A stretch of 63,527 nucleotides of DNA, the filler included, from Klebsormidium nitens (lineage: Eukaryota; Plantae; Klebsormidiophyceae), in NCBI GenBank assembly GCA_000708835.1. It is 4 parts of 4 records of this genome, joined end to end, with 100 filler letters (N's around TTAATTAATTAA, not from the genome) between each part and the next. Parts side by side here need not be neighbours in the genome. Positions count along the whole stretch, not along the records: positions 25,199 to 54,259 come from DF237160.1; 3 more parts are not named here. One strand, given 5' to 3'. The notes under the pieces are model-generated. The model worked only from the letters and a program-made list of their open reading frames with translations, had not been told where the DNA came from and did not search any database. Each line of letters begins with the position of its first letter. The first letter of the stretch is position 1. This document shows, piece by piece, positions 103 to 54,259 of this stretch. The position numbers and the translations under genes were made by a program.

Positions 103-1741
103 TCAGGTCCGCCGCACTACACGATCCTTCTGCACTACCGTTTCCCAAATTTCCTCTACGTAAAGTTTGAAGGCGCTCAAAGACTTGTGCCTCGTCTTTT
201 CCATCAGCTCGCAAATACTATAATTGAAATTCAGAGCCTCGTGCTGGATAGAGGAACGCCGAAAGCTATGTAACGTCTCCCCTTCGAATAGGCCTGCAGT
301 TCGCAGATGCTTTTGCAATCTCTTGCGCAGAGTGCTCGAACTTATAGGACCTGGTGCATAACCTTTCCTGTCGCGAGTGTCACGCCAGATTGGCTCCTTG
401 CCATAGCGTGTCCTGAGCGCGCGCGTGCGCGCATCGCGCCGCCGCCACAGGCTCATAGCCTATGCACGGCCATAGCCTATTCATGTTNNNNNNNNNNNNN
501 NNNNNNNNNNNNNNNNNNNNNNNNNNNNNNNNNNNNNNNNNNNNNNNNNNNNNNNNNNNNNNNNNNNNNNNNNNNNNNNNNNNNNNNNNNNNNNNNNNNN
601 NNNNNNNNNNNNNNNNNNNNNNNNNNNNNNNNNNNNNNNNNNNNNNNNNNNNNNNNNNNNNNNNNNNNNNNNNNNNNNNNNNNNNNNNNNNNNNNNNNNN
701 NNNNNNNNNNNNNNNNNNNNNNNNNNNNNNNNNNNNNNNNNNNNNNNNNNNNNNNNNNNNNNNNNNNNNNNNNNNNNNNNNNNNNNNNNNNNNNNNNNNN
801 NNNNNNNNNNNNNNNNNNNNNNNNNNNNNNNNNNNNNNNNNNNNAGTCATGCACCGGAATAAGCAGCCATTCTCCTCTAAGTCGTAACCTAACTGCTTGA
901 GGGCGACAATCAGCTGAGCACTCGCCTCCAGGAAGGACAAACGGACGGAACTCTCAGGGGCGCTGAGCGGAATCCGTGCTGACGGCTCTTGTCGCACGGT
1001 CTTCGACCAACCAGGAAGAGCCACCCCCTCGCCCCTCTCAACCTGCCTGTGCAGCAGCTCTCTGCATTCCTTGCCGCGCGCGCGGGACTCCCAAAGATAC
1101 AAGAACGCTGCGCGATCCATTAAGAGATTGCACTGTTCGAGCCCAGAGCTGCGTGCCACACCCTCGCTAAGAAACGCCAGCAAACGGTCTAGCTTCTGTT
1201 CAGAGAACACCTTCGCTCGTTTCTCTCTTACCCCCGCATCGTGCAGCAAGACAGTGTAACCGTCCCGATACGACTTAACGAGTTCTGATCGGCCGGGATT
1301 GGCTGCCCCATCGAAGCCCATCAGAGTGTAACTACGCGAGATGTGACTGATGGCGTTCTTGACGGCGCTCGCTGAGAGAACGTGCTCCCCGCTGTTTGGG
1401 ATCACAGTACGACTCTCCCCCTTATGTTTGGGGATGTACTCCGAGTGAATGAACGTCGCAATATCAGCAGGACTGGCGGTTTCGACGGAGACCCCGTAAG
1501 CATTCTTGGTCAGAAAGTTGCTCAACTCGTCGAACACCCGTTTTCTACCTGAGACGTTTTCTGCGGTAGTGGCTCGATCCGCTATCGCCACGATTTCGGA
1601 CAGAGAACGCTCATAATGGACCAAGGTCTCAGTCTCGGACCACCTCGCCTGATTTGACGGTGCAGAACCGGATAAAAGCCCGCGAGCTTCCAGGATGTGA
1701 TTGTGGCAGACGGTTTGGAAAGCAGCCCTGCAGAAACACAA
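103..1741 (-). mobile_element. Tyrosine recombinase of DIRS/Crypton type, interrupted by an insertion and an N gap
   Basis: Two ORF pieces (380-1741 and 103-456) together give the catalytic set: R (WESRARGKEC), K (WSKTVR), HxxR (TLHSFRR), H (RHKS) and Y (FKLYV). The N-terminal helical part (ETASPADIATFI...NPGRSELVKSY) resembles the N-terminal domain of DIRS-type recombinases. Confidence 0.85.
379..844. mobile_element. Short insertion (MITE-like, mostly unsequenced) in the recombinase gene
   Basis: The coding sequence CLFRCMT (845 and above) resumes as TRDRKG (378 and below). AGT occurs at both 376-378 and 845-847. The sequenced part has a repeated CATAGCCTAT motif; 488-844 is N. Confidence 0.55.
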
Positions 1742-2271
1742 AAACGGATGAGTTATTTGTCAATAAAGTTTGTCTTGGTGACAATTGTATTTTTGGGCGA
1801 GAAGTGCGGCCTCAGGGGAGCGAATCCTGACCGTCTTTGCCCCAAACCATCCATCCATCTAACGTTGGACATTTCACAGAACCGTGTGCCTGCCAGACCA
1901 TTCCTTCGGGAATAGCCTAAGGAATGCGGGCCTGCCACACGATCTGAGGGCGACCGTCTGCTCTTGTCGAAGTTTAAAGGCACCAAATTGCCCTGCAGAC
2001 TAAACCCCTAACCCCGGCCGACTGCCGCGGCCGCCTAAACCTCGCTGCCGGGATTTAGCGCGTTCGAATTCAAAGCAAACTTGCTGACGAGGCCTCGCCG
2101 CGTCTGAACTGCTGAGCAGAATCAGCTTGAAGTGCTGAACAAACCCCGAGTGTGATTCTTTCAAGTCTTCATTCCCAAATTACCTAAGCGCCAGCAGCGG
2201 CGCGTCTTGGCGCTGCTGATCAGGCGCCATTTCTTTCTTCCCGCCCACCTCCCTTGTCACACTCCAAGAAA

Positions 2272-26406: not shown

Positions 26407-28039
26407 TCATGTGGCAACTTGAGATGGACCGGGACATGCAACCCTTCTTTGGTCAGCTTTTTCAATGCACTTCCTCCCAAAATTGGTCATTGAATTATGC
26501 AAGGCTTGTTTACATTTGCCAATTGTGTCTGCTTTCTCTCTTCTCGCCGCGCTTTCTCTTCCCTCTAGAATCCAACAAAGAGTGGCCGCTTGAAGAAGGC
26601 TTCTCCTCCGACTCACCGGAGGGGACGTCGACCACCGCCTCCGAATCCGCATGGGCAACACAGTGAACGGTGGCCTTTCCCGCAAAGTGAGAGTCCATTG
26701 TGTCATAGAACTTGGACCGGTCGCCCCTATCGTGACCGGACTTAGCATTCTGAGCTTTGTCGAGTTGATAGTCCTTGAGCTCCTTGGCAAACCTCTTCCT
26801 GCAGGACTCGGCATTCTTGTTGAAGTCTGGACAGTTAGCTAGAACCTCGGTGGCCACCCTAGTCCACAAGTCAACGCCCTGCTTGGGCGCATCAAATTGA
26901 GCTTGCATCAAGGCTCGTTGCTCGATGAGCTGATGAATCCACTCGTCCTTCCAAAGGCGGCTTTGAGCTTCCTGCAGAAGCTCCGGATCAATGGCTGGTG
27001 CTTTGTCTGTCTTCTTCTTGGTCGCTGGGGTCTTTGTGCTCTTGCTGCCCGCAGGGCGGCCACGCTTCTTTGTGGTTGGTGCATCCACAGCTTCTGCACA
27101 TGGAAGGCAAAGGATATAAAGCTTGGGGCGTGCAGCTTGCTATGGAGGCCCCATGATTTACGAGTGCCCAAGTCTGGACTTAACCTGAAAAAGGGCAGCC
27201 CGTCCAATAACCTCCTTGGACACCCATTGCATGGAAGTTATTGAAGCTGGCCAAGACCGAGTGCTTGTAAGCAGAACCACTTCGAACGGAGACCCTTCTG
27301 AACAACAGCAATCCTTTCAGGCTTTCTGCACATCCCACATCAGAAGCCTGACACGTGCCTAAGATTGGATTTCTTTGAAGGAGAAACACATCCAGAAAGG
27401 ATCCCCAATGGAATAAAGCGCTCATTTACAACCAGGGGAATCCTTTTGAGCCTGTTTGGACGTCCAACATTAAAAGCCTGATAGCTGCCTCTGGGCATTA
27501 TTGAACACACAACATAGGTACATTCCGAGCTGCTCGTAACATGTCTCCTTTAGGAGACAAGTGATGGAAGACCATTGACCAGGTTGGTCAACAGGACTTG
27601 AATGATGCAGGAAGAAGAAGCGTGCAAATCAGCGAGCACACCCGCCCAAGAACAATGCTTGCTGGCAGCTATACATACCTGGTGTAGCCGTCATCGGTGG
27701 TTGTCCCCCAGGCATTGATGAGGCTTGCACGTGAGGAAGGCCTCCCTGCTCGTACCGCGGAGCATCCGGCCCTGGATTAGCAAATGCAGCGTTTGGAGGA
27801 CCCTGTGGCTGATGCTGGATATTGTGAATGGGACGTTCCCAGTAGCCGTCGCCTTGGTTAGTGGGGTCATACTGCTGTGTTTCAAGGGAATCATATCCAG
27901 GCGCATTCTGCTGCTGCTGAGATATGGTGCTGCCTGGAGCTGGGTGCTGCGTTGGCATACTGTCTGTTGGCAGCGCAAGGTTGCCAAGAAAGCCCCGGTC
28001 AGGCCGGAAGGTGCTTGCTTCGCCCTGGCGCCCCTCCAT
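26407..28039 (-). CDS. AT-hook + Myb/SANT-like (trihelix-type) DNA-binding protein, multi-exon
   Basis: Exon about 26510-27097 encodes KKRGRP (AT-hook) then W-spaced helices LWKDEWIHQLI...LWTRVA...SCRKRFAKELKDY...SKFYDTMDSHF. An upstream Q/P-rich exon lies at 27629-28039. Exact 3' end uncertain. Confidence 0.7.
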
Positions 28040-33040: not shown

Positions 33041-36000
33041 CGGCAAACGGCCAAGGCGACCGGAAGCAGGAAAGCTCAGATAAATTCAGGGCAAGTGCGA
33101 GTAGGTGCCAAAGAGCCCGAAACTTTCAGGCCAAAGCTGCGGGCCAATGATGGCGTTATAAGTTGAGCAACGGGATCGAGCAACTCAACAATTACAAGGA
33201 TGCGTTGCTGCATTTTTATTTTTGTGCTCCACAAGGATCACGTTCCTTATTTTTGAGGAAATGACAGTCGCCTTTCAGATTCCGCTGACGCGCTTGATAC
33301 TTCACTGGGCATTCAATCGAAACGTCGAAACAGTCGATGCACACCGAGTGCTTAACGGGTCATCACCCCCGCCGCCGGTTGCTACAGCTCGGCAGTTACT
33401 AAAATCCAACGAAAGCAATCGTCGACATCTGTCAGGGTGTAGAACCTTTAGAAAAGGGCAAGACTGATGTTTTCTAAACAATCTCGCAGACGAAACATCA
33501 GCAAGAGAACCTTTGAGATGACGCATCAGGATGACGAGTGGGACAATGATGAATACGCTGTAATACAGTCCGCTGGTTCTTGCAAGAAGGCTGCTAAGGG
33601 TAACCCAACTGAATCAGAGCCTTATTTTGAAAGATGATCATCCAAAAAGTCGACCGTATAGGGTCTTCGAGGTCGTCAGTCGCCCCAGCCTACTCGGACA
33701 ATCCACGACTCTTGAGGAAGATTTGAATCGGACAGCAGTCGTGATTTTCAGTCTGCTCACATGCACAGTTCCCGGGTCATCCCCTTGGTCGCCAGCTGGC
33801 GCAGCCCGATGATCACGTTCAGCAGCTTCGGCGCCCAGGCGTCCTCCCCGGTTGTGACCGGAAGTTCCACCCGACTGATCACGTCTCGCTCTAGTTGCTC
33901 GTGTTGGGCGGTCCTGGCCTGCATCATTGGGGTCGCGGCGAGCTTCGCCACCTGTATCAAAACAAGATGAGAATTTGTTGGTTTGGACGCCGTTCTGTTT
34001 CCGTTACAGAAAAGGTGCCACCAGCTAGATCCTGTAAACAGAGCCCAAGAAGCAGCGATCAAAGCTAGGAAATGCATGTGACCCTGAAGGTTAAGAGAAG
34101 AGGCAGCGTCTGTGGAACTCTTCGAAAGTGATGCACTGAGAGGGCACAGGTTCAAGATCCAAACGAGCGTCATGGGGCTCCTTCAATTGTGCCTTGAGTC
34201 TGCCACATTGAAGTTGCTGATACATTGAAGTCCAGCACGCAGGGTGGATCAAGTGGACACGGGGCCATGAAGCTGGATACCCAGCCAATTCTGAAGTGGT
34301 CAGGGGCCCTCTTCTATACAATGTCCTTGGCATCAGACTACCGCGGACACGTCGCAACAGACAACCGCTTAGCAAAAGGGGTCCGACACCAATCGGCCAG
34401 AATGGATGGACTTTCAGCCAACCTTGCAAGACCAGCCTTGCCTGTGAGCACATGAGATAAGAGATGATGTCGAGGAGACAACCCTTTTCTGGACCGTCAC
34501 ATTGGGTTCTGACTGATGTAGGTCCTCGAACGCTTATCAGGAGTACACGTTCCCTTACCAATCTCAGCATCTCAATGCCGGTCCAGCGAAGCTTCCTCAA
34601 AAGTATCTTAGTTTTTGTTGAAGGCACAGTCAACAGCTTACTTTGAGCGCAAGGACTATGACCCCCAGATCCTGGTTGCTCCCCAACATAGTGTGCGTTA
34701 TCCCCGCCCCTGTGGCCCCCATGAGTAAAGACGTAGGCATGGCGTCCCTCCACGGCCACCTCGACCAGGGAGCAGAACTGCGGCGGATGAATTGGAAACG
34801 CAGTATGTACGCTTTCAGGGCCCTGGCTTCAGAAGAATTGTGCATGGCAACGACAAGTACCATTCTTCCCCGAATGGGACTTCTACTTTGGCCACCAATC
34901 TGATGCACCAAACACAATCTTCTCCCGACAGAGCCCCGACAAAGCCCCGATAGAGCCCCAAATGAAAGCTCTCGCCAGGCGTAGCTTGTAGATTCCACTG
35001 TGAGTATCTTCTGAATTGTTGGAAAGAAAGACTTGCATTCATGGTAAGAATGCAAAAAAGTATTTTCAGAGACACAATGCTGTATATCCTGCAGGCTTGA
35101 ACACAATGGGATCCAACCCCTGGGACAAAACAATAAAGTACTAGTGGTGAATATCTTATCAAGAGTCTGATTTGCAATAGCAATCAGCATGTTCATCTTA
35201 TTTGCTTGAGGAATGACGAGCCATTAGCGGCAAGGAGATAAAGAAAGATGCATAAAACTCTGTGCAAGCTCCTTTTAAAGACGACAAGTTTCCGTGAGCT
35301 GTTCTGCACTCACCTGCATCATGAAGAACAGGATTGCCTTCGCATATTTCCCCTGTCTTGTACCTTGCATTCCAGGCAATTTCACTTTGGTTGTAGACCT
35401 GAATAATCCACTAGGTTGATTGGCGCCTTGTGAGTCCTACAGGTGGATCTGCTCTTCTCCCAGGAAAAGCAGGCTTTGCAATCTTGCATGTTCCTCTACC
35501 ACCATTTTGGCACTCTTCCCCTCTTGAGGAAACCTTGGCTTTTGCTGCTGCCGCTTAACAGCAATAACAGATCAAGGACGAGAAGAAAATGCATTCCTAT
35601 GGCACTGCCCCGCACCGCCTATCATCAGCCTAGAAAGGTTTGCGGAAAGCATATGCTAGTTGTGAATATCATATGCTAGCTGGGAAGCTTTGCAACCCTG
35701 GCAAACTTTGCTCTGCTCTGGACTCTCTGGAGCCTGGACAGGCTGGAGGTTGCAGAGCTGAGACAGCAGCGACGCTTGCGGCTTGGCTTTGATGTGCAAG
35801 CTTTGCAGCCAAACCCTAAAATTCAGGGCCTCCATGAAACCCCCAGCGTTGAGCAGGACAGGAGGAGCGTTACGTGCTGCGACGTGAAAGGTCGACCGTG
35901 ACGTCGCTAAGGGGTTTTCAAAACGGGTTGTAACCCTGTGGTTTAGGTGGGTTTAGGTACCTGGTTAGGTAAGGCACTGATACCCGTGACCTGGCTCGAT

Positions 36001-39000
36001 TACCTAGTCTGACCCCAAACCCTGCATGCAAACCCGTGGTGCGCAGTGGCGGCCGCCGCCCACCTGCGCGTGGCGCGGCCGCGCTGCCCGACACCCGGAG
36101 ACCAGGGTCAGCTCCTATTCCGTTAAAGGATGAGCGCTGTGTCCGGATGGGGTCCGAAGCCCCATCCCGACAGATTTGTCGGAGATCGAAGCCGATCCAA
36201 ATAACCTGCGGATGAACGAGTCTGCGTGTGGTGGTGATTGGGCCGCCGTCCAATTGAAAAGCGAGCCACCCGGCACCCCTGAATTCCGGATCCGCTGGAG
36301 CCCGTCGACGTGTGGTCCCTAGCTTTTGACGAGGATCCGGCGGGACGGCGAGCGCTTTTCATGCTAAACTAGCAGCGATGCCGATACGACGCGCAACTCG
36401 CTTGAACCGGTGAGGACAAGGTGAAAATGTATAGACTGCAGAGAGCCCGCGCTGACACTGACGCTGGTGTGGCGCAGGCAAGATTGAAACGAAGTGGCAA
36501 GCGGCGCAGCGTTTCCGCACCAAGCTCTGGAATGGAAGGCCTGAGGACATAGGGAACGCGAAGGGTCAGGATTGGGCTGACCGAAACCAACGAACACTTC
36601 GAGCATAACCGAAGTCAGCTTCGGCGCCGCAGTACTGCCGCCTGCTGGCGCGCCAAAGACAGCGTGGAAGCTGAGCGCCGTGCCGCGAGCAGGCCGAGGG
36701 CGGAGCTCAGAAGATGACGAAGTCAACGATGGGGACGAGAAACGGTGCGGAGCGCTGGCGTGCTCTTGCTACGTTTAACCCCGACCAGGTTCTGGGATCT
36801 ACCCGTCCGTTGAAACGGGGAAGAGAGGGTTTTCACCTTTTGCTTAGGGTGAGGGAGACAAGTTCTCCCCGGCCTGCTCAGGTGGCGGGAGTTTCTCCCC
36901 CGTCCGGCTCCGAGGCAAACTTCGTTCGCTTCGTTCCCACTGCATTGTCGATCCGGGGTAGAATTCCTCCGGCTTACAAGAGAAGATCGCTCCCACAAGA
37001 TTCGCAGAGAGGGAAAAAGTGGTCACTATGCCCAAATGCAAGGGGAAAAAACTTTCAACCCGTCGTCCAACTCCTGTCTTCCCGCTTTAGGGGGGGAGAC
37101 CTGGAAGGCGTGGGGGAAAGTCACTTCCGAGTCCCCCCGTGCGCGAGTTCTCGAGCGCAAGGAGCCCGGAGAAGACAGCTCCCACAGCCTCCCTCGCTGT
37201 CCCCGGGATTGCCTGCGCAAACGGAAAACCTCTAGTTTCTTTTCCAGCCCCTCTGGATCACTGATTTGCCTCAGCCTATCGAGCTCCTCGACCGGTTCCG
37301 AATCCCAAAAGTATCTGAAAGAATGCGTCAGGTAGAGATTTGAGAGCGTGAAAGATTCTGGAGCCTTGGAGTTGCCCGCGTACGGAATTGTGGCAATCGC
37401 ATGTGCGTTCGCGCGAACAAGCAGGAAGGATTTTCCGAAACACTTCAGTGGCGCGGGTTGGTTGGCTGCAAAGGAGTTGTAATACTGTCTCAATCAAAGC
37501 GGGCCGTTTAAGGCTAGGATACCCAGTGCTTGGCGACAACAATTGAATGACAAATCTGAGAAGGCCAGGCCAAACATACAGGAAGCAGATTGGCCTCAAG
37601 CCCTAGTGAACCTGCGGTCCCCCGATCGAAACCCGACATGCACACTGAACAGAACGGCTTACAAAAAGTTCATATGTCAGGACGAGCTTTGGAGAGGGGC
37701 GAGAACAGGCTGGAGATGCGAGACCCTCAATTCGCGAATTGAACGCTTCAACAGGAGGTCCGACAGAAAATTTGCTCAAGGAGAGTGGCGTCGGAGTGAA
37801 TGCAGTCAAGTGCATCCATGTTTTCTATAGCCCGGCGAGTGCAGTATGCTCAGCAGAGAACTAGGTTGTGGCCCCGCCATATCTTGTGGCAGACAAAAGG
37901 GGTCGGAGAGACATGTGGGGCAACCAGATTCTCTCGGCAGGCACAGAACCAGGGGCACGGATGGATCTGGACAGGTCTGCATTTCGAAGAAGGGAATGGC
38001 GGCCGATACGGAAGGAAAGGGCCTGTGTGGGATACGGAACGGAAACGCCTGGTTGGGTTGGAGACAAAAGTTTCTTGCAACATTACGGGACGTGCGAAGC
38101 CCAAACAGACAGCTGAAACTAGAGTTTCGAGTGCAGAATCGGCGACTGGCGGAATTGGGGTCAGGGCCAGGCTGGCGGTCCGGAGGGAAGGGGAGGAGCA
38201 GATTCAGACGTTCCCAACTTCAACGGAAACAAAACCAGAGCAAGCGCCCCGGCAGGCTGATTCAGCCAAGCGGTGAGCGGCTTGCGAGCGGAACCGAAAG
38301 CAAACAAAACGGAAGTGCGCGTATTGCCGCAGGTCATAAAATGTTATTATTCAGCAGAGCATGCACTGCAGTCATTCTGCCCATTTCATGGAGCTTACTG
38401 CCGGAACCGTGCCCCTTCCGGGATTGCTTCCGAGGATCTATTCCGTGGCCAAGTTTCTCGAAAGGTCGCGCCTTGCAGTGCCCCCAATTTTCCGTTCTGA
38501 TCCGCCGGTTCCGTCGGTCTAAGATGACAGCCGGACTTTGTCTTCTCAAACTCCGAAGCGGAAATGTCTGGGAAGAAGGCGGCGAAACGACAGCTGGCAG
38601 CCGCAGCCTGTCTGGTCGACTCTCTTGGCGGCCGGCCCGACAAGGCGGTGCCTGAATAGATATGAAGGCGCTCTTTCCGCCGGCTTCCGGAGGCTTGAGG
38701 CGAATTGGAGCCGTTTGCCGTGCGAACGGCAAGATTCAGGTCCTCTTTACCTCGAAGAGTCGAAGTGTTCGCTGGAGCAACTCTGCCAGGGACCTTTACC
38801 TTTACGCAACCCCCGCGCGCTGCTCGTTAACGTCTTTTAAGTCGTAGCCGCGCATTTTCCTCTAAGCTAGGGAGGGCTGAAGATAAGGTCGAAACGTCTG
38901 CCATCGAGTTGGATGATATGAGTCTTGCGACGACTTCGAGAACTTCGACTTAGAATGCTACTTCATCTTCTATGATACCCGACTCCGTGAACTGCCTGCT

Positions 39001-42000
39001 AACAGATCCTTACTCGGTTGATTCAAGGTGATCTTCGACAACAAAGGGGTAGTGTCCTGCCATCCCCTGACTCACTTTCCACGGCTAACCGATATCTGCG
39101 CTCATCCAATCTCAGATTAGTAGGCTGCCTCTTCCCCAAACCCAGCTGCACGTCGCACGCCCTGCCGCTCTGCTCCTGGCTCGGCTCCCTTTACCCTCGA
39201 CATGAAAAACACGCACAAGCGCTCCCCTCGCCGCCTTCAGATCTTGAAATAAAACCACCCCGTGAAACTTGGCGAACATCAGCAGGAAGCACGTTCCGTT
39301 CTATGCCACTTGAGCCGATATTCTCGACGCATCCGGTCCCGCTACGGAATCCGGAACACCCAGGGGACTATTTGGACGCTCGTCGTACCCCCGTTCGATG
39401 GCTGAGGAGCTACTTGGAAAGAGGCCCGGGATGCTACCAAACATATCGATCAACTCCAGAAGCTAGTGGCCCTACGTACCCGCGGGGCCACCCAATGAGT
39501 TTGCAGGCGAAAGGCGCCCCCTCCTCGCGCGGCAACCTGGCAGTACGCGCCGGCCTTGCAACGGCCGTCGGCAGCTTGGGAGACTGGAGGTTTTCGGGGG
39601 TTCCTACTTGTCCCCCACGTGTCCGGGGTCCCCCACCTGTCGGACAGTTGGCGCGCAAAGTCGAGGCAAAGCCGCAGTACGTCACGTGCAGCGCAGTACT
39701 TCTTGGGACCATGGGGGGAGCGGAATGAACCCGAGACTAGCGGTGCTGCTTAGTGAACTTTGTTGTGGGCCGTGACATTCGAGCTTTATGGTCACGGACT
39801 GTGCTGGCGCCTTTCCTCAACCGAGTACGCGCTTGCGCAGTGACGCAGTCACACGTTTCAAGCGCCCCTGCGAACCCCCGCAAGCCTCAGGGCCTTCCAG
39901 GGACTGACCGACGTCACCGTTGTGCTGGGCTCCGCGGCCGCGCCGGGCCCGCGGATTTGGCCGCAAGCAAACGAGCCGCTTTTGTCTCTGACCTTTACTG
40001 ATTCAAGAGCATACCAGCCTCGACAAGGGTGCGGGGCGGCGGCAACAAAGCGGCAAGTTTGAAAGCGGGCGGCTGGCGGAAGGGGAATCGAGTGACGCAT
40101 TTCTTTACTACAACGAGTATACCGTCTGCTACTGCGACGTAATAAGAAGGGTTAGCCGGAAGGGAAACGGGTACGCGCGCTTGGGCGCGGCCGCCCTTCC
40201 TCTTAAACGGTCCCTCAAACCCTCGGTAGGCCTTCACGTGTATAACCGTAACCTCCGGATAAGGCTGACGGGCAGCCCCGTCCATCGAGCGGACCTGACA
40301 TAATGAACTGGGACATGACTGAACGCTAGTTCCAATTGACCTAAGGAAGCTAGATATGGAGAAGTAAGGCGCCTTGGTATGGCATCTTCTGTTCATGACC
40401 ACTCACCAAGTATGTTAAAGCATGAGCATGATGATGCATGAGGGGCTCTGCAAAGTGCCGGTGAATACCACTGATGTGCATAGTCCACTGCCGGCGACGG
40501 CGGCCGCAGTATTCTGTTCTATAGCGGAGAGCCCTGTTTATTAAGTTCGTCACTTGTGGTGCTGTCACTTAGTCAACCAGTTGCTATGCGGACACCTGCC
40601 AAGCGTCGACTGCGGACCCAGATCGAGATGTCATGCACGTCCAACAACAGGACAACGCACCAGGTTGCCACATGTGTAGCGTGAGTGGCAAGATATTGAA
40701 AGCGACGGTGTAAAGGTGTAAGTTTCCATGACAGCTGATGAACTATCATTAGCAAAGTCTCTCCATTTACAGCTCATACATTTGCATGATCCGTAATGGT
40801 ATTGAACGTGCCAGTACTATCTCAAGGTAAACCCCGTTTGAATGCACCTCACTCTAATTAAGGCTCTTCGTTTGCACTTAGCAAGCAGTACCATGCATTT
40901 GATATACCACATGATGTCTGGTTGCCACACAAACCGCTTTGCCAGGCAGCCGATAAATTGTTCGAGACACGGCCGACTCATATAATGATATAATGACGAT
41001 CTTCCAAGCACTAGCTTCAAGCACTAGTACGTGTGCGACCCCGACATCGATCGAAGCATCTCATTATATTGAACCGTGGCCGGCTGCATTCAGAGGTTTT
41101 TGCCCATTGATCCAATCTAAGTACGTCCAATGTGGTACGTCTCAAAATATACTCGTATGCAACTTTGCCAGATAATGTGGGTCACTCAGGGTGTGCGTCA
41201 CTCAGGGCTCGGGCGTGCGCCGCTGCAAGTACACATCAACATTCAAAAATACACTTCATGTATCATTGATTTTCACCATCACGACAATCTTATGAACCAC
41301 GTTATGCATCAAGACCCGGGAAGTTATGGTCTGTCGTGCAAACTTCGGAGAAACTTAAGTAAGCTTGAGTGGATAAAATGTATATCTACAGGCTACGGTA
41401 ATCAACGACCACGTGCCAATGTTGTTCGTGAAGGCTAACTACCAACGTGATGCTAATCTCATGCATCCAATCAACATGATGCTAGCAAGTCACGGTATTT
41501 ACTAGAAAAGGAATCAAACTATGAAACTAGAAATAGCTCACGCTAATATAAGTTAGTTTAGACATTCCAGCAAACAAATCTGCTACTACTGATCGACTCC
41601 TGCCGGTCAAAATACCTGTTGACATTACTGAACTGAGTCCTGGCTAGCATTATTACGTTTCAAGAAGAAGACAAGCTAACGGCATGGTTGTCATATACGA
41701 ATTTTCCATTTTTACTTACACACAAATAGATAGTAGCTATGCAACCTAAAAATGGAAGCACCGGGAGTGCATCAAAGAGTTGCGTCTCCTCCAAACTACT
41801 AGAGTTCATCAAGGGAAACACACGTTCCGAGGTCCGTTTCGGACCCCAATAATGTGGTAGTAATGATGTGGTAGCAATATATATAGATACAAACACGTTC
41901 GACTCGGTCGCCATTTACTGAAGTCAATCAAGCCGGTCCTCTGAGTGCCCCTTCGCTGCAGAAGAAAACAATACGCTTCAGTACGTAGCAGCTTACCAAG

Positions 42001-42871: not shown

Positions 42872-45800
42872 CTAACTGCACGCGGACCCAAACTTGCACA
42901 GTCCGCTGCAACACAGGTTCCGACTGGCCGGGCATATCGCGCCATTGAAGTCGTCGCAGTTGGGGCACACCTGCTTCCCGGTACTGTCGATCGGCCTGTT
43001 CGTGCACTTCCCTGCATTATGCACCGTTGAAGTCGGCTTAAAGTCAGGGCAAACAACCTCGCTTTTAGGTGACCGTTCCGACCAGGGCGACGATCCCCGG
43101 CCCGATTTGGCGCCTTCTTTCATCGAGGTGAGGACAGTTTGCAATACAAACAGATTGATGCCCCGTTAGGTGTGATGCCGGCAAGTTTCTGTGCGAAGCC
43201 AACGTCACTTTACAACAGGGCCATTGACTCACCAAGGTTGCCGCTAAACTCCTCGGTGCAGCAATAAGCAGTTGGGCAGTCCCCGGCATAGCTACAGTCA
43301 CAGCCGCTTTTGGTTGCCGCGCAGTTTCCGTGCGGGCAGCACACGCTCTTGTCAGCGGGGCAGCTCGCACCGTTGAAGTCGCCACAGTACGGGCACACTT
43401 GGGTGCCGTTGGCGAGGACGGGCGTGTTCGTGCAGACGCCTGCATTAACCCGCGGCTGGGCTCGTCAATCTTTGCAAGTTAGTGACTTGAGAAAGCTCGG
43501 GCTACTATATGTCAGAAGCAACTTCGGCACGAAAGACATTTGCTAGGGCCTGGTGCAAATTTCCCATGTGCCCAAGAACGAGGCAGTGATCTTCCTTACG
43601 TCTGGCAATGGGCTCCGATCTGTTTGTTGAGACGCAAATCAAGTCGTCCGAAGAACGCTTTGCTCACAAAGTCTGGCCTACTTCAACTTGGTAAACTCAT
43701 AAGTCTATCCTCAAACGGGCATCCAACCATGCATGCCCTCTGGAGGCTTCATTTGATTCACTCGAAGCTTACTACGTCCTGGACAAAACAGGCAGTAATT
43801 CCATGGCCGCACGCTGGCGAGACTGTTCGACGAGGCAACCACGCCCCGGTCTACATTCTTCAAAACTTTGGCGAGCCATTGAAGTAGCCCAACATATGTG
43901 GCCGGAGTAAGACGTAACAAAAGACCATTCGACTTACCGAGCTTGCCGCTGTAGTACTCCGTGCAGCAAAAACCACTCGGGCAGTCACCGCTATAACGAC
44001 AGGTACACCCGGTATTGCTGGCTGCGCAGGTTCCGAGCGGGCAGCAGACGCTCTTGTCGGCGGGGCAGCTCGCGCCGTTGAATGTGTTGCAGTTGGCGCA
44101 CACTTGCGTCCCGTTTGTCACGACGGGTGTGTTGGTGCAGAGGCCTGCATCAGCGGGTGAGCTCGTGAATCTCTTGAGGAACACAAGTCCTAGGTGCGGG
44201 TTGAAGGTGCGTAGGCAACCAAGTGACCTTCTATGGGCCCTGAAAACATCTAGTTTCCAAGAATTTCGCTCTTTGGCAATCAGAAAATGAGGTCAACTCT
44301 GAGTTGATAACTCCTGGAGAGGCTACTTGACTATACTTGAGAAGGATTAACTGAACAGCCTGACTATATAGTGACACTCAGTTCAGGGAGAGCTGTTGTT
44401 GTCATCAGAATGCGCGCCAGCCTCATCAGTGGTGAAGGGCGCTTCTAAACCTCTTAATTTTTGAGTCAACTGTCAGCAAGCAGCCATAAACCTGCTTACT
44501 CAACATTATGGGCCCAAGAGTCCCTAAACTTCGCTATGCGAAAATCGGAATGAACGGAGCGCAAGAGTTTGGCTGCCTACCCTGGTTGCCGGTGTATTCC
44601 TCCGTGCAGCAATAGCCGGTGGAGCAGTGTCCGGCCGCCTCACACTTACAAGCGCTCTCACTCGCGGCGCATTCCCCGTAACCGCGGTTGCAACAGAATG
44701 GTTTGTTGCTGGGGCAACTCGCGCCATTGAAAGAAGAGCAGTACGGACAGACTTGGTTGCCAGTTGCAGGATCGATCGGCGACTGTACGCATTTGCCTGT
44801 ACGGAGAAATGGGCAAAGGTCTTTTGTCAAGATGCTTTGGACCACTCAGGTTTGAGTTGGCTTCCGTTGCTTAAGATGGTTTGCAAAGAAACAATTACTT
44901 TGTAACGGCATCGAGAGTCGTCCGGACACGGAATTCGATCAGCGGGTGTACCAGATGGACTCTTGTGTGCAGCTTCCAAGAGTAAAAGGCCCGCAAACTC
45001 TTCGCATCAATCTCCCTTGCTGTGATCTGTTTGAACAATAGCCTGCACTATTCCACACATTTGGCAGGGCTCGCACGGTCCGTCAGTTCCTGTCGGGGAT
45101 TTGACGAGCCGAGGAGGTCAGAGTTTGATTCGGGAGATGTTCAAGGGAGGTGTACTTCTATTTGTCTATTCTTCCGTCAAGGTAAACATTCCCGTGAACA
45201 CAAAAAATCCGGTTGTTTGGGGGGCTCAGATGGACAACCCTACTGGCCACCGTAAGTTCAACAATCCAGTCTTTCAAACCTACAAGCTTCCGACGAATAC
45301 CTCACACTTCAATGTTTGTTGTGGCGTCAACTTAGTTGCACAGTGGTGACCCGATTGCTGAACACCTTAACCCCCCCCCCCACTCCTTGTTCCTTGACGC
45401 ATACAGGCATGATGGGACTTTGATAAAGATGTGAGCAATTCGAAACAAGCTCTTTAGGCACGCCAGGGGCTCACCCAACTCGCCATTCTCCTTGGTGCAG
45501 CAATATCCAGACGGGCAGTTGGATGCGGTCCTGCACGAGCAGTCTGCGCCACTTGCAACGCAATTTCCTAACTGGCAGCACACTGGTTTAGAAGCAGGGC
45601 AGCTGAGACCGTTTAGGTCGTTGCAGTCTGGGCAGATTTGCGTGCCGTTTGCGAGGACTGGCGTGTTGTAACACGTACCTACGAGCGGCAAAAAAGACGA
45701 TTCTGATTAGACACATTCCCGGGTTTGTCAATGTTTGAAGGGTGTGAAAGCGAACGAGCTAGCTTCGAAAAGCATGAGCCACAAAAAGCAATCGAGAGCA

Positions 45801-48800
45801 CGTAGTCGCCGGAAAGAAACGCTGTCGGATGGAGTGATGGTTGAAGAATTGACGTCGATCCGGGGTTGGAGAGGGTGCAGCAATTCAGGTGGCGCCTCAA
45901 AACTTTAGACACGAGAGAATCGAACATTCAAACCGAAACTCTTGCAGCATATCTGGAAATACCATGGACACAAAATTCGACGCAACTCCTAGAGGATCAA
46001 GGTTTGAAAAGACTACTTTTGCATTGACAGCCCATTTAAGAGTTCGAAACAATATGTGTGTGACGAGATTGAAGCAGCTTGCAACTTCGGATTGATGAGA
46101 AAAGAAGCAATTATACAAGCAGCAGAATGCGAGCACGGGACCCTCGACTTGTGCCTGGCTTTGCCCGGACTGGACCACCATCAGTACACGATTCCCCTTC
46201 GAGGTCACCCGCACAACAAAGCAGGGCTTCAGCGGAGGCACCCTACCAGCAGATTGTGAGACTGGGAGCTCACACTAGTAAAAACGCGAATACGTCTAGA
46301 CTGATCGAAGTTACACACCAAAGTTACGCTAACCCATCATTTTATCGTACTCGTGACTGCCGCTTCAAATGGGGTTATACTCACCCTGCAAGTAATTCGG
46401 GTACACCGTATACTCGTACTCGCGGCTGCAGCAGTTGTTGGGCGGGCAATAACCGGCGCTGATGCATGTGCAGGAGCTTTCGGACGCGGCGCATTGCCCC
46501 GTTGGGCAGCACGTTCCTTTGCCGGCGGGGCAGCTTAACCCACTCCAACGAGTGCAGTCTGGACACACCTGCTTGCCGCTACTATTGATGGGGGCGTTCG
46601 TGCATTTACCTGTAAGTACACGCTTTTGTGATCGATGTGGCTTGGGAGAAGAAGGTTACATGGTGATAAATAGACGAGAGGAGCCAATAATCAGACTGTC
46701 GAAAATTGAGAGATGAAGCACTACAACGACGTAGAACCGACAGGTTTGAATACATAACCAAACGACTGCTGTACCTTCAAGGTGGCAATGCAATTTGGAC
46801 AGGAAGCTTGCAGGACTTGTGTGGCTGCCCGTAATCGTTGGCGATCGAGCTGATTCTCTGGGTATTAGGCACGGGGTAACGCATTCACAGCAACCAGTCG
46901 CATCGTCTTAATTTAGTGGAAGCTTGGCCCTCGACGTCTCGAATCGTTAGCATGCAAGTTGGTTGTTAGCAACCAAGTTGGTCCAGATTGACGGTCGAAG
47001 CTCTAAGAGGAGGAGTGGCAAGGAGAACCCGCCGGAGTTCCGTCGTCGTAACGTGCTCCAAGATCCTGATAGACGGCGCTGGGATTGCAATCGTACACAC
47101 CAAAGGTGTTAAGGACGTTTCAAAAAATAACAGATCGCGTCCTAGCGGCCTGCACTGATCATCAACGCTTATGGAATAACAGGCGAGGAGCCGACCTTCC
47201 TTATGACATCCTGATCAAACGGAGCCCGCCAACACAACGCACCTGTTTTGCCAGAGCTTTCTTCAGTACAGCAGTAACCGGTGGGGCACTCGCTGGAATA
47301 CTGGCAGGTGCAGGCAGCACCGCTCGCCGCGCACTGCCCGTTTGGACAGCACACCTTCTTAGTCGCAGGGCAAGCAGCGCCGTTGAAGTCGTTGCATTGT
47401 GGACAGATTTGCGTACCGTTGCTGCTGACGGGGGTGTTTGTGCAAAAACCTGCATGAGCGGTTGGGCTTAGACTTCAATCGAGGAAACCAGGGAAAAATT
47501 CTTGGTGCATTTTGAACGCCCACACTCAACCGAGCGTGATTCCCAACGTCCAAGGATGGAACCAGACACACGATAGGGCCACCCATACGAGTTGTGCTCC
47601 TACAAAAAAATCAATCCCAGATAATCTTGTGTGTTAAAATTGTCTAAAGGCAAATCTGGCAAAGCATGCTGCCATGCTCAAGAGGGCTTCGATTCTTGAG
47701 GCGCTGGTGCAGAAACAAACTTGATTGCAAAGTCAGAATATGCATCCACCCATGCGCCAGCCCCATCAGTGGTCGATCAACCCAATCAGCCTGTGAGATC
47801 AGCAAGCTCATGTTCGAAGTTTGCATCAAATCTGAGGCCCGAAAGTCTCACAAATTCTCAAAAGGATCGAACCAGGAAAAAGGAGTGAAAGAGGACCGGC
47901 TGCCCACCAGGATTGCCGGAGTACTCCTCCGAGCAGCAATAGCCGGTTGGACAGTATCCGGCCGCTTGGCATCCGCAAAAACCCTCACTCTCAGCGCAAT
48001 TCCCTCGAGGGCAGCAGAACGACTTGTCGGCAGGACAACTTGCGCCGTTGAAGCTATAGCAGTAGGGACAAACTTGGTCTCCGGTTGCAGGGTCAACCGG
48101 CGACTGGACGCATTTGCCTGTGAGAATAAGCACTCACTTTACTATCAGTTTCAGCTTCTTTCAGACGGTCTGAATCGAATCTGCAGGATTTGGAGGATTT
48201 CTTGTATGATGGGTCGCTCCGTCTCGGTTCGTCCGTTCCGTAGAAAACTCTGCCTAGCCAAGGAGTTTAACGTTGCTATAGACGATAGAAGAAGGGAATC
48301 TTTCTTTCGATTGTCAAAGTAGCAACTTTTGTTGAGCTGGGAACCGGTTCTTGAAGCCGACTCAGACGAAGAAAGACACCGGCCATCATAAGTCGGGTCC
48401 AGCTCGATTTTGCAACCCTACAAGCTTCTAGCCATGTCCATCACTTTTGCCATAAGGTAGGGTGTCCAACAGGTGTGAAGTGGTGACGGAAATACGAACG
48501 GACACCTCCTTTCCCTCGTTTTGAGCCGCAACGATCCTGATAGTGGTAGGGCTCTATTGACGGGTCTGAACATCTGTGCAACAAGCTATGTGGGCACGCC
48601 AGGGGCTCACCGAACTCGCCATTCTCCTTGGTGCAGCAGTACCCATACGGGCATTGAGAGGCGTATTGGCACGAGCAGTCTGCCTCGCTCGCGGCGCAGT
48701 CTCCCAATGGACAGCACACTGGCTTGGAAGCCGGGCAGCTGGCCCCGTTCAGGTTGTTGCAGTTCTTGCAAATCTGTGTGCCATTTGACAGGATTGGCGT

Positions 48801-51800
48801 GTTGGTACAACTACCTGCGAGCGGCAAAGACCAAGGTATCAATCAAACATGTTTTCCGCTCTGGTTACTTTGCCCTTTGTACAGGCTATGGAAGTGACCG
48901 CAGGAGGCTACCAAGCATCGAAGTCAAAAAAGGATAGAGACCGAACGGTCATCTGGCAAGAAAATGTGTGAATGACAAACGACATCGATGGGTCAGGGGA
49001 ACGTTCAAATCTAGTCGTGGTTCAACAATTTCAAAATATAATGAGAAGATCAGTTGAGGTGCAATGTTGGTTCATTCCACAGATATCTAGGGGGCTACGA
49101 GTCCTAGAGAAATGCCTCGCAATAGCGGTTCAAACAAAGACAAACCGTGTGATGTCCAAAAAGTGACTCCTGCCAACAACTTTGGAGGGATCCGGAAAGA
49201 AAGGCCGTTTAGGAAAGCGGCAGTGAGAATCGGACTCCTCAAATTATGACTTCAGCACGACTAAACCACCAAACACATTCAATCCCCTGTCCAAGGTTGA
49301 ACGGCAAACATGGCATGTCTTACAGTGGAGGCGCCCAGATAGAAGGTTGCCAGACTCGGAAGTATCCCTACTTAGCAGAAATCAAAGCGGAGTACATTTG
49401 GAGGTTCATGGCTTTGCTGAAGCCTTTGAATCCAATCTGAAATGAGCGGAAGAGCATCGGTTGCCTACCGAGGTTGCCGGAATATTCCTCCGAGCAGCAA
49501 AAACCGGACGGGCAATATCCGGCCGCTTCACACTTGCAACCGCTCTCACTCGCGGCACATTCTCCGTGGTTGGGGCAGCAGAACGACTTGGAAGCCGGGC
49601 AGCTGAGACCGTTGAAGCTATTGCATTGCGGGCACACCTGTGTGCCATTTGCAAGGACGGGCGTGTCGTAACAGGTGCCTACGAATGGCAAAGAACGGAA
49701 GATCAGTAAGGGGCACTGCCCATCCTCGTCGAATCCAATTTTTTTGTCCACTTGAGGGTATGAAGGCAATAGCGAGCCAGAGCAAGAAAGCATGAGCGAC
49801 AAAACGTGGTGAAGAGCACGTGGTTACAAGCCAGAGTGGTTGTTGAGCAAAGATTGCAGGGAACAACGTCAACGGGTAGTCAGAAGGTGCAAGTTTGGTG
49901 GCAGCTCAAAATCCAGACTCACTTAGAAGTGAGATCTGAATGGACAGAGTAAAACTCGAAGGACTCTCTGGGAAATAGGTAAGATTGCAATTTGCTCGTC
50001 CGAAGAAGATCACGGTCGGTCGGAAATGACCCGTTTGCATAAAAGGCTTCCTGGTTATGTGGCAGTTCGGAAGGTCTAGTTGCGAAGAACAATGTTTTGG
50101 CCAAACATTTCGCAAAGTCTGAAGGTAAGAATCTGCCGTAGAAGCAGCAGGGAAAGAGAACGGAACCTTCGACTCGTGGCTTGCACGATTGGCTCAACAA
50201 CGTACAGCTCCCTGCTCAAACTTAACGGCAAGGATGGCAGGTCTTCATCGTGGAGGCGCTCCAGTAGCATTCTGCAGAAAGTAGAGCTTGTCCCTGCTTA
50301 GATTGTGGAGTACGACTGGCGTTCATCGGGTTTATGCTTTGGGGTTATACTCACCCTGCTTGTAAGTCCCGGTGTTGGAGTCGTAGTCGTACTCGCGGCT
50401 GCAGCAAGTGTTGTACGGGCAATAACCGGCGCTGATGCATGGGCAGGAGGTTGGAGATGCAACGCACTGCCCCGATGCGCAGCAAGTTCCTTTGCTGGCG
50501 GGGCAGCTCAGCCCGTTCAAATTGTTGCAGTTTGGACAGACCTGCTTGCCGCTGCTGTTGAAGGGCGCGTTGACGCATCTTCCTGCAAGGACAAGCGTCT
50601 CTTTAGACCATGTTGGCTTGGGGCAATAAGCTGAAAGCGGATGACGAAGTAAGAACATTGAACCGGGAAATAAAATCGTTGGGCATCACAGGATCTGGAT
50701 AAGCGATGAAGAACTACCCCAACGCGATGTCTACAGATCCAAACGACGACCTTTCAGACGTTCTCAACTAGGAAGCTTGGATATTGGTGGCTGCCTGTGA
50801 ACGTTGAGATTCAAATCGATACTCTAGTAGGTATCACAAAACTCATCCGCATCTTCGTTCCCTCAGAAGCCTGGGGGTAAACGTTTCGGAAGTTTTGAGC
50901 AACTTGAAGTTGGTTTCAAGAATGATTTAAACACTTCAAGGATTAAGGGAGTCCGTCAACCAACCGTCAACCACTATTATCCTTGTACGGTGCCCCAATC
51001 CAGACAGGCGGCAGTGAAATGGCCATGCGATAGACCCAAGATCCTCTGCGGAGGAACATCCACCAACGGCGATTCACTCCGTCCCAGCCGCCACATTAGC
51101 AAGCTCATGAATCGACCATTTAATAGCCGACCTTTTCTTGAACGTTCTAATGAGACGGAGCCCAGGGAAACGACGCACCTGTTTTGCCGGATGACTCTTC
51201 GGTACAGCAGTAATTGCTGGGGCATTGGCCGGAGTAAGTGCAAGTGCAGCCGGCGTTGGTTGCCGCGCACTGCCCATTCGGGCAGCACACCTTCTTGTTG
51301 GTCGGACAGGATAACCCATTGAAATCGTTGCAGTTTGCGCACTCCTGGGTGCCGTTGCTGAAGAAGGCCGTGCTCGAGCAGTGTCCTGGAGAAGGAAGTT
51401 GACTCTTGAGTCTCAGAGCGGTGTGAGCAAGCAAATAATGGTGAGCATCGTTGGAGCGCTGGTCGGATTCTCGTGCCAAGTCCAGCTTGAAGCTCGCTAA
51501 TCTCAGGCCAAGAAACGAGAAGCAGATCAACTGGAGATCGATCTACATATGAACGGGGTGCCAAAAGTGTCGAAACAATGAGAAAGAAGGGTCGACGAGC
51601 CTGCTCACTCGCACTACACGCTTTGAGCGGATTCTCGTCAGAAGCGTAAAAGTTTTAAAGGAATCTCGCCGCCATTCGATCGAGCAGTACTGCACACGGT
51701 TACTATGAAGCTGGGGCACGAAGCTGCACCACGTCCGTGAAGCGTTGTGCCACTAAGTTGAGGTCATCAAGTTTTCGGATTTAGTCAAAAAAAACAAAAA

Positions 51801-54259
51801 CTCATAAGTTGGGGCACTATAGTCCATGTGGCTCACCATCGACGTAATAGCCCGTGCAACAAGAATCCTGCGGGCAGTAGTAGGAGCTATAAGGACAAGG
51901 GCAGGCCTCCACGTCACTGACGCATTCTCCGGACTGTCTACAACATACTCCCTTGTTGGCGGGGCAGGAGACTCCGTTGTATTCCTGGCACTGTGGACAG
52001 ACCTGCGCGCCACTGCTGTCGAAGGGTGCGTTTGTGCAATGACCTGCAGGAGGAGAAGACGGCTCTCCCTGTGTTATTTTCAAATCAAGACCACTCCAGG
52101 TACAGAAGTTCGCGTCTCCCTTTTCATACGAATAACAGATTCGTATTTAAAGAGCAATCCGACTCCACTTAGAAACTTGCGTTAAATGGCGGAAGAGTGC
52201 CTGGGGGAGTCAAAACGGGCCTGCTGACGCAGTTTGCTCTTACGAGAAAAACGCAAGGACGGATACCCAGCGTCAATGAGCAACTGTCTGCAAACTGGAA
52301 GGGAAAGCTGCAAATAGTACGGTCTGGCAAAAGGTTTCGTCCGAGATGAGGGAACCAGACAGCAAGATCAGCGATCTCGAACATCAATTTTAAATTTTGC
52401 ACCTCGAGCATACGTGCATGCTAGGCCGATCTCAGACATTTTGATGGCCACGATCAGTCGCCAGGGATTGACCATAGATGCCATCTTCTACAACCCAATC
52501 ATGCCAACGCTTACCAGTTGTACCGTTTCGGTAATCTCCAGTACAGCAATACCCTGATGGACATTGACCATTGGACTCGCAGGTGCATGCGCTCTCGTCT
52601 GCGGCGCATCCTCCAGTGGGGCAGCAGAAAGGCTTGTTGTCGGGGCAGGCGAGGCCGTTGGCGTTGAAATCGTTACAGTTAGGACAAGCCTGGGTGCCAT
52701 TTGAAAGGATAAGCGTATCGGTGCAGGTGCCTGCCCAAGAACGAGAGAGAAGTTGAAGGCAAGTACTGAGACAAAGAGCGTTTGCCTAGAATCTGATCCG
52801 GTCTTGTACCCAGCTGCAAGCTCATCAAGGCTCTGCACAACATACCTAGCGCCATTGCTGACGTATGCGATCTATGTACGGAGCAACGTATGTCGATCCT
52901 ACACTTTTCAAGTGTAAGTACACTAAAAGAGACTAAGAACCTGGTGAAATATCTCTTGAAGACGAGTCAGTGACCCGAGCAAAGAAGCCTGTGCGGATTC
53001 AGCCTGTCACGTTTGTGAACATGTAACATGTGTTATGATACTGCTAGCAAGTGAAGTTCTTGCTCCTCCCAGTGAACTTGAGTGCCTCACCTTCGTTGCC
53101 CGAATAGTATTCTCTGCAACAAAAGCCTGTTGGACAATAATATTGGGAGTAGTAACAAGGACACTCATTGGCCGATGCTTTGCACTCTCCGGTGGCGCAG
53201 CACACTCCCTTTTCGGGAGGGCAGGTCGGTCCGTTGAACACGTTGCAATTGGAGCAGACCTGGGTTCCGTTGGACAACACTGGCACGTTTGTGCAAACAC
53301 CTGAAAAGGAGCGGAAACGATTGTGAGGGTCGGAGATACAAGACGTTCAGTGGAGGACGCGCTGAAAGAGAAAGAAGCTTGGGAAAACTTCGATGCTCTT
53401 CATTCGGGCTCTTATGAAGCAACGGAGGGTAAGAGGAGTCAAAGAGACCATAAGAGCGAGTCTACTTCCAAAGGTTCAAGAGGTCTAATGTGAGTACGCA
53501 GCAGTGATTGAAAGAGAACCAAGAAAAGAGGGCCATTCTTTGATAGTTGCATATTGGAGGTCTGGTGAAGTGTCCGTTTAATTCGCATTGGGTCAGGATG
53601 TCTCGAATCTAGGCCAGGGTAGTAGTGCTTTTCGTCTCAAAGTCAGCGAGTTGCACGTGCAACTCAAATACTAAAGCAACTTCGTTTCCAATAGGGGCAG
53701 CCGGAAGCGACAAATAACGCCTTTGCAAACGCTACGGATGGAAGAGCTAGCAAATGTGAAAATCACACACTTCTTTCAACATCTCTTAGAATAACCAGCT
53801 TGTCCACAACACGCACAGTTTTTCAACTCTGATGAATTTTATCGACTATGTCAAGTTCAGGTCAACAAGTCTTCCAAAGATATAAAGAGTACCCTTGCGA
53901 GACACTTACCAACTTTGCCCGTATACTGTTCGGTGCAGCAGCCTTTATTCAGGGCGCAATCAGAGGTCGATCTGCACCTCCTCACGGGGGGTGGAGGTGG
54001 AGCCCGGCGCGGCGGGGGGGGATTTGGCCCAGGGAGAACCAAGGGTGGAGGATTCAATGGAGGCGGTGGTGGGGGGTTTTTCGTAGAGACTGGCGGCGGA
54101 GGCATGGGACTTTGTGGTGGCGGAGGTTGCTTTGGAGGAGGCGGGTTTTTCTTGGGGGGCGGAGGTGGTGGAAGAACGGCTTTGGGAGGGGGAGGGGCAC
54201 CGCGTGGGGGAGGGTTGAGTGGCGGCGGCGGGCTTTTGGTTTGAGGAGGTGGGTTTGCG
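42872..54259 (-). CDS. Large Pro-rich / Cys-rich repeat protein (probably extracellular); 5' end lost in gap
   Basis: A Pro-rich exon ending about 53909, then repeat exons 53091-53300, 52515-52730, 51837-52043, 51179-51385, 50355-50582, 49469-49678, 48611-48814, 47908-48117, 47243-47449, 46385-46609, 45475-45678, 44581-44796, 43938-44144, 43233-43439 and terminal exon 42872-43011. All introns are phase-1 GT-AG, and every internal exon is a multiple of 3 and stop-free. Confidence 0.9.

Follow-up and report, generated by a model that had tools for sequence, protein, structure and literature searches.

The window analysed here is a 63,527-nucleotide stretch joined from four parts of the genome of the streptophyte green alga Klebsormidium nitens (GenBank assembly GCA_000708835.1). 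Its 29-kb piece from DF237160.1 (positions 25,199 to 54,259) carries on the minus strand, between 42872 and 53300, an array of 15 cysteine-rich units that an earlier note had described as copies of an unrecognised 12-cysteine repeat domain. We found that this region is probably the 3′ part (two-thirds or more) of a real intron-rich gene, the product of which would be a secreted, extensin-like and cysteine-rich cell-wall glycoprotein consisting of a proline-rich region and a chain of disulfide-bonded modules. In kind, it belongs with the tandem repeats of disulfide-rich, presumably extracellular modules on symmetric exons known from other systems; the module family itself appears to be undescribed.

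Regular-expression and frame scans combined with splice-site mapping recovered the 15 units and no further ones outside this interval in the 29-kb piece. Each unit corresponds to one exon (Table 1) as the earlier note had it, with the qualification that only 14 are full copies, of 68-76 amino acids and exactly 12 Cys apiece, while the fifteenth comprises 46 amino acids and 8 Cys before the stop codon. This unit is a natural truncated C-terminus typical of the family; relatives from K. nitens (P0002) and Mesotaenium (P0008, P0009 and P0010) finish in the same way (CCxxxCxxxC-end). The unit exons measure 204-228 nucleotides, all divisible by three, and are bounded by a pyrimidine-rich acceptor, (Y)nNAG^G, and a donor of the form G^GTRNG, i.e. 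G^GT(G/A)(A/G/C)G (^ marks the junction). At every intron a Gly codon is split after its first base, which places phase 1 on both sides of the unit exons. All 15 introns in the part of the gene covered (221-706 nucleotides) are in phase 1 and all 14 full units are symmetric phase 1-1 exon modules, confirming the exon symmetry previously claimed, with all junctions located at the homologous Gly preceding the first cysteine (C1). For unit 2 we preferred the donor GTAAGC, 9 nucleotides downstream of the site originally proposed, and the resulting tail length agrees with that of a K. nitens four-unit fragment (P0006).

Nor does the gene begin with the first unit at 53300, contrary to what the earlier note had implied, since a further exon lies upstream, coding for a polyproline region and then a 4-Cys half unit. 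This exon runs beyond the edge of the piece and the true copy number of units may therefore be higher than 15. A consensus derived from the alignment of the units (A1) agrees almost letter for letter with the one reported from reading the sequence, and an N-x-S/T sequon occupies one homologous position in 11 of the 15 units (NGT in nine, NSS in two), in keeping with the frequent NGT glycosylation sites described there. The protein ends in ...CCSGLCKFGSACS-stop without a hydrophobic tail and a membrane or glycosylphosphatidylinositol anchor is thus not indicated. The earlier suggestion of a surface protein is unsupported, a secreted wall or matrix protein being more likely. Scans for tRNA genes and Rfam families returned no matches in the piece.

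When 1.84 billion representative proteins were searched with a profile built from the 15 units, a type of check that the earlier note had proposed for algae and plants, only 37 matches reached E ≤ 1e-3, including 19 at E ≤ 1e-10. All named true members are uncharacterised green-algal proteins, the remaining true matches are metagenome or Logan fragments, and no land-plant protein is present among the 37. Members in K. nitens are GAQ87590.1 (KFL_003630080; P0001), GAQ77715.1 (KFL_000020760) and GAQ87586.1 (KFL_003630020), all annotated as hypothetical. Others comprise Edaphochlamys debaryana KAG2481915, several Mesotaenium endlicherianum gene models and four proteins of Raphidocelis subcapitata, one of them weak. 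Members match the profile of the window units with E values from 4e-261 to 1e-10 over 1 to 20 stretches per protein and share the consensus C-x5-CP-x3-CC-x~10-G-x-C-x8-G-x-Q-x-C-x2-C-x7-9-CP-x5-CC-x2-G-x-C-x6-C, to which the window units also conform. The weakest matches are unrelated or similar at the motif level only, namely bacterial HYR/DUF proteins and proteins with 4-Cys repeats of the form CPxxKPxxCxDGxCxxxxxxC. Tandem repeats of the latter type (CPxxKPxxCxDGxC-x6-C) are found in the weak matches P0024, P0029, P0035 and P0037, for which Pfam returns only a faint Ldl_recept_a match, and may represent a wider motif class related to one half of the unit (the alpha half, defined below).

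The window units are 55-75% identical to units of the K. nitens members. The upstream exon is 83% identical over 42 amino acids to residues 475-516 of GAQ87590, the similarity being lost at the predicted donor. Like the window protein, GAQ87590, GAQ77715 and GAQ87586 have the 12-Cys unit, a proline-rich region ahead of the chain, a half unit at its start (…PPPPPVR-C-RSTSDC…) and a truncated last unit; the K. nitens homologues include about 400-500 residues of S/P-rich sequence. The order of units is mosaic, in that the first exons of the window resemble GAQ87590, units 3-4 are closest to GAQ87586, and units 6-8 and 12-15 resemble GAQ77715. By sequence comparison, the window gene appears to be distinct from all three annotated copies. 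We also noted that KFL_003630020 and KFL_003630080 lie together on a 98.7-kb K. nitens contig, and that GAQ87590 contains irregular, shortened units which may be annotation errors at cryptic splice sites.

Several relatives have features of extracellular proteins. N-terminal signal-like hydrophobic leaders were recognised by eye in P0004, P0008, P0012, P0014, P0036 and the metagenome sequence L001. P0004 (Mesotaenium ME000168S01796) comprises eight units, a PPPPPSPPPS linker and a papain-type Peptidase_C1 domain without the I29 prodomain, thus combining the same components as the plant RD21 granulin proteases in reversed order, although this architecture could instead be a gene-model fusion. 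In P0007, P0011, P0017 and P0019 (Raphidocelis and Logan sequences) the units are fused to a common region of several hundred residues (…GKDV.KYQAFH…LDFATAP…AADAAAQFW.EEC…). Pfam scans of this region in P0007 and P0017, and a Protein Data Bank (PDB) search with that of P0017, gave no match.

The unit could not be assigned to any described domain, as the earlier note had anticipated in calling it unrecognised and in naming a Pfam match as the result that would overturn this. Pfam returned no family for ten window units or six small relatives at E ≤ 10 and, at E ≤ 0.01, nothing for seven full-length relatives other than the Peptidase_C1 domain downstream of the repeats in one Mesotaenium model. 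Neither a single unit nor the unit profile had a meaningful match among PDB sequences. The window exons were searched and folded singly, with the K. nitens fragment P0006 serving as a proxy for the multi-unit product. An AlphaFold2 (AF2) model of P0006 (alignment A2) had a mean predicted local distance difference test (pLDDT) score of 78 and a predicted template modelling score of 0.56, while one window exon modelled alone reached a low-confidence pLDDT of 57.8 and was left out of the fold search. Foldseek found no match to the P0006 model in the PDB at E ≤ 0.001; local matches were to knottin toxins and inhibitors only (28-30 residues, root-mean-square deviation 3.1 Å, E > 4). In VIA-align, run over 48,161 chains, the highest Z scores were 2.2 for colipase and 2.1 for evasin-3, a VIA second look returned no match, and the ESM Atlas provided no feature match and structural template modelling scores of at most 0.32 (Dickkopf, Kazal, WAP). 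No description of the 12-Cys repeat was found in the literature searched. The unit is therefore undescribed within reach of the sequence, fold and literature searches made.

Comparison of protein termini indicates that the exon unit is offset from the structural domain, because the termini of relatives lie between C8/C9 and C2/C3 instead of coinciding with the exon junction. In the window protein and most relatives the chain begins at C9, after a proline-rich region in the window protein, P0001 and P0002, and directly after the signal-like leader in P0004, P0008, P0012 and P0014; L001 starts at C3. Where the protein C-terminus is also the end of the chain (window, P0002, P0008, P0009 and P0010) the chain stops after C8 with CC-x3-4-C-x3-6-C, so that the window protein has both the start and the truncated last unit typical of the family. 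In this register each period would divide into an alpha half, C3-C8, with cysteine spacings of 7-9/6/0/4/6, and a beta half, C9-C12 plus C1-C2 of the next exon, with spacings of 5/4/0/9-10/11-12. Both halves have the form C…CP…CC…G-x-C…C and show the six-Cys knottin framework C-C-CC-C-C, with only 1-2 residues (C8-x-C9 and C2-xx-C3) between one half and the next. We prefer to read the chain as a series of alternating 6-Cys modules, which would be out of register with the exons. In the P0006 model a confident four-residue beta-strand (G-x-C1-x) follows immediately after the exon junction and the lowest confidence is in the C3-C4 loop.

Evidence from a second organism bears on the predicted splicing pattern. 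L001 is an intronless metagenome contig (Ga0315919_1001553) with an uninterrupted frame at 299-2224 (+) encoding a signal-like leader, about four and a half contiguous units and a 308-amino-acid C-terminal region. This region has a sub-threshold match to Root_cap (E = 0.0033; 18 bits, cutoff 27) and its nearest Atlas cluster is partly Root_cap. P0016, a genomic read-through open reading frame (ORF) on a 46.9-kb metagenome contig, shares 96% identity with L001 over the length of precisely one unit (SG^HC … EPG^G), and at both predicted junctions the two diverge. The simplest reading is that the two would be genomic and spliced sequences of one gene, which would imply the same intron positions in a second organism and units joined contiguously in the transcript. 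L001 lacks a poly(A) tail and its transcript nature is inferred.

The array is old, not homogenised and under purifying selection, because the paralogous exons have dN/dS ratios of 0.10-0.39 with saturated dS (dN 0.16-0.41, dS 0.5-2.2), the introns have diverged and no repeat is apparent at the DNA level; Tandem Repeats Finder detected no tandem array, the copies being too diverged. The Cys of the 14 full units, the reading frames and the splice sites are all intact. A pseudogene was rejected given the intact frames and splice sites and dN/dS below 1, as were chance Cys-rich ORFs given 15 in-register copies on one strand with none elsewhere in the piece. The identity matrix reveals an old block duplication, with units 4, 5, 7 and 8 corresponding to units 9, 10, 11 and 12, in addition to a unit 13/14 pair. 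Introns are diverged except for short similar remnants between introns 5 and 10, 7 and 11, and 8 and 12, which agree with this duplication. The array grew as single exons, and also a block of 4-5 exons, were duplicated in tandem; its uniform phase is best explained by the survival of only symmetric exons in such a process. Metazoan extracellular mosaic proteins (EGF, Ig and similar) are likewise built from phase 1-1 exon modules, with one repeat per symmetric exon and tandem exon duplication, but there the exon boundary falls between domains, whereas in this green alga it would lie inside a module ahead of a core beta-strand.

The same symmetry had led the earlier note to consider the units as cassette exons, the regulated skipping of which would generate combinatorial isoforms varying in repeat number and composition. 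All 15 introns being in phase 1 and all 14 complete unit exons being multiples of three, skipping is permitted by the phases, and because the junctions are homologous (at the Gly before C1) a skip would regenerate a complete chimeric module. However, all donors and acceptors look constitutive, the transcript-like L001 keeps its units contiguous, and tandem exon duplication, directly visible in the array, already accounts for the uniform phase. Exon symmetry is best explained by tandem exon duplication, the simpler of the two; skipping itself is putative, and the reading of the units as cassette exons with regulated skipping seems quite improbable to us.

As a functional interpretation, we favour a structural or adhesive component of the cell wall or extracellular matrix. 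The proline-rich part of the protein would form a rod or cross-linking segment and the Cys-rich chain a rigid, protease-resistant spacer, possibly glycan-binding; the protein would be N-glycosylated at the recurrent sequon, O-glycosylated on hydroxyproline and secreted. Extracellular fusion partners in relatives, a Peptidase_C1 domain after a Pro-rich linker and a weak Root_cap-like domain, are in line with such a location. Secretion of the window protein, the module register and the wall or binding function are inferred. Several observations weigh against this interpretation or restrict it. The upstream exon contains eleven runs of at least three prolines but only one SPPPP, most runs being N/K/Q-PPPP, and the region would thus be extensin-like and not a canonical extensin. 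The 5′ end of the gene and any signal peptide lie past the edge of the piece (54259), and a role in the wall or in glycan binding is suggested by architecture alone. For the module register, the two-module reading draws on cysteine spacing and termini only. An hhalign comparison of alpha with beta was not significant (P = 0.12), leaving internal duplication of the unit hypothetical, and one Raphidocelis model starts at C2 and does not fit the register cleanly. The contrast in pLDDT of 78 versus 58 is only suggestive, as it comes from two AF2 runs with different alignments.

Other identities for the repeat were weighed against this cell-wall glycoprotein. In one of them the repeat is a strongly diverged granulin with two of its four CC doublets split by loop insertions. 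The protein would then be an algal ‘progranulin-like’ chain that either serves in regulation as a protease-associated domain or gives rise to released peptides. Granulins and the repeat alike have 12 Cys per period and CP…CC motifs and form tandem chains, and in the natural register the ends of the repeat are granulin-like (C-x5-CP-x3-CC at the start, CCP-x-G-x-C-x6-C at the end). Alignment by hhalign of 69 natural-register domains to 90 granulin modules, taken as bona fide modules from proteins returned by two word searches, scored 18.6 (P = 1.3e-3), a value reached by none of 150 column-shuffled controls (10.4 +/- 2.3) nor by the reversed profile (9.3). UniRef names P0036 ‘Granulins domain-containing’, and the Mesotaenium member joined to a papain-type protease by a Pro-rich linker has the components of plant RD21 proteases. 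The exon/module offset and the half-module start also parallel progranulin, the genes of which have exons out of register with the modules and the protein of which begins with a half module (PMC4527844), but this is a parallel and not evidence of homology. Conversely, Pfam Granulin (PF00396) matched none of the ten window units and six relatives at E ≤ 10 or the seven full-length relatives at E ≤ 0.01, where true granulins score 30-42 bits, and the HH probability is only 18-21% compared to 99.3% for a plant versus animal granulin control. There are two CC doublets instead of the four of granulins (C-C-CC-CC-CC-CC-C-C), the central spacing differs (C-x12-C-x2-C-x7-C-x6-CC-x4-C-x6-C-x-C-x5-C-x4-CC for the window period), and no granulin structure was found in the Foldseek or VIA searches with the P0006 model, which has short hairpins. 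The 1-2-residue linkers, in place of the inter-module linkers of progranulin, leave no space for peptide release. Bona fide granulins are present in one of the same species (Raphidocelis P0090), so that the repeat is at least a separate family. On sequence grounds the resemblance appears weak though above the shuffled background, it does not amount to family membership, and we regard a granulin identity as unlikely.

A comparable level of doubt attaches to the possibility that the chain is a multivalent hevein- or knottin-type lectin that binds either polysaccharides of the wall or glycans of microbes, for example chitin, with a role in defence or adhesion. The hevein/knottin-like spacing pointed out in the earlier note has partial support inasmuch as each unit may be divided into two C-C-CC-C-C halves, and the alpha half (C-x7-9-CP-x5-CC-x4-C-x6-C) is close to hevein and knottin peptides. 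Aromatic positions are conserved in alignment A1 (F/W in NxFNG, Y/F in CPxGYCC), and knottins are the only local Foldseek matches, at the insignificant E values given above. Solanaceae lectins combine an extensin-like region with hevein domains, and the window protein parallels them in joining a hydroxyproline-type Pro-rich region to small disulfide-rich modules within the plant lineage. However, Chitin_bind_1 (PF00187, CBM18) never matches at E ≤ 10, only a partial C-x6-CC-x4-C-x6-C being shared, and the structural matches (VIA Z of 2.2 at best) are far below significance. The hevein Ser/Trp/Trp/Tyr signature is missing, the window modules are fused head to tail, and glycan binding is putative. 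A hevein identity is not supported. The many tandem small disulfide-rich modules and their weak structural echoes of toxin and inhibitor knottins could also be taken to indicate a polyprotein precursor, the cleavage of which would release numerous small knottin-like peptides with antimicrobial or protease-inhibitor activity. Since the modules abut via 1-2 residues with no dibasic or other processing sites, and the proline-rich region and large extracellular fusion domains point to an intact multidomain protein, we consider this very improbable. A more far-reaching proposal, which we put forward only tentatively and do not expect to hold in full, is that the repeat represents a new disulfide-rich fold forming a linker-less rod of alternating 6-Cys modules. 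It would perhaps be an ancient sister of granulin that is lacking in land plants and occurs only in green algae, both chlorophyte and streptophyte, with exons off-register so that exon gain, loss or skipping regenerates complete chimeric modules. If true, the plant lineage would have its own equivalent of the progranulin ‘CN-exon’ design and of the 1-1 exon shuffling seen in Metazoa.

Table 1. Coding exons and first intron of the cysteine-rich repeat gene, listed in the direction of transcription (positions of the window; ^ marks an exon junction)
Feature	Position	Strand	Length	Remarks
Upstream coding exon, cut by the piece edge	53910..54259	-		Polyproline (extensin-like) plus half unit C-x5-C-x5-CC...TGKV; donor G^GTAAGT, phase 1; from frame translation
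Intron between proline-rich exon and unit exon 1	53301..53909	-	609 nt	GT...CAG; junction KVG^VCTNVP as in K. nitens P0001
Unit exon 1	53091..53300	-	210 nt	Phase 1-1; 12 Cys; NGT sequon
Unit exon 2	52515..52730	-	216 nt	GTAAGC donor; 207 nt if the weaker alternative donor at 52524 is used; phase 1-1 with both
Unit exon 3	51837..52043	-	207 nt	Phase 1-1; 12 Cys
Unit exon 4	51179..51385	-	207 nt	Phase 1-1; paralogue of unit 9
Unit exon 5	50355..50582	-	228 nt	Phase 1-1; long tail; paralogue of unit 10
Unit exon 6	49469..49678	-	210 nt	Phase 1-1
Unit exon 7	48611..48814	-	204 nt	Phase 1-1; paralogue of unit 11
Unit exon 8	47908..48117	-	210 nt	Phase 1-1; paralogue of unit 12
Unit exon 9	47243..47449	-	207 nt	Phase 1-1
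Unit exon 10	46385..46609	-	225 nt	Phase 1-1
Unit exon 11	45475..45678	-	204 nt	Phase 1-1
Unit exon 12	44581..44796	-	216 nt	Phase 1-1
Unit exon 13	43938..44144	-	207 nt	Phase 1-1
Unit exon 14	43233..43439	-	207 nt	Phase 1-1
Last coding exon, truncated unit 15	42872..43011	-		8 Cys, ending CC-x3-C-x6-C-S; TAG at 42872-42874

Within the gene, a 19-bp tandem repeat (1.9 copies, 46946-46982) is located in the intron separating unit exons 9 and 10. Elsewhere in the piece, a 192-amino-acid ORF at 26510-27088 (-) has a match above cutoff to the Myb/SANT-like DNA-binding domain (PF13837; E = 3e-8, 34 bits), so that it may represent either a regulator of the trihelix type or a gene derived from a transposon. 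A weak kinesin-motor match below cutoff (E = 0.007) at 34630-35196 (-) falls on a P-loop-like GATGAGITHTM with Ile where kinesins have Lys, and no further kinesin motifs were found in the piece. In the GC-rich stretch at 36000-40200 (up to 0.60 GC), both strands have long stop-free frames that overlap and gave no Pfam matches; the stretch may consist of repeats or transposon DNA.

For the origin of land-plant cell walls, Klebsormidium and other streptophyte algae are the reference point, and most of their wall proteins are unknown. The present repeat adds a previously undescribed Cys-rich module family, with 37 matches in 1.84 billion proteins, no Pfam model and no structural neighbour, which is joined to an extensin-like region in the window protein and to a papain-type protease and a Root_cap-like domain in relatives. 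The 12-Cys repeat is a clean candidate for a new Pfam/InterPro entry, and it provides a non-animal example of repeat expansion via symmetric phase-1 exons with an unusual mismatch between exon and module boundaries.

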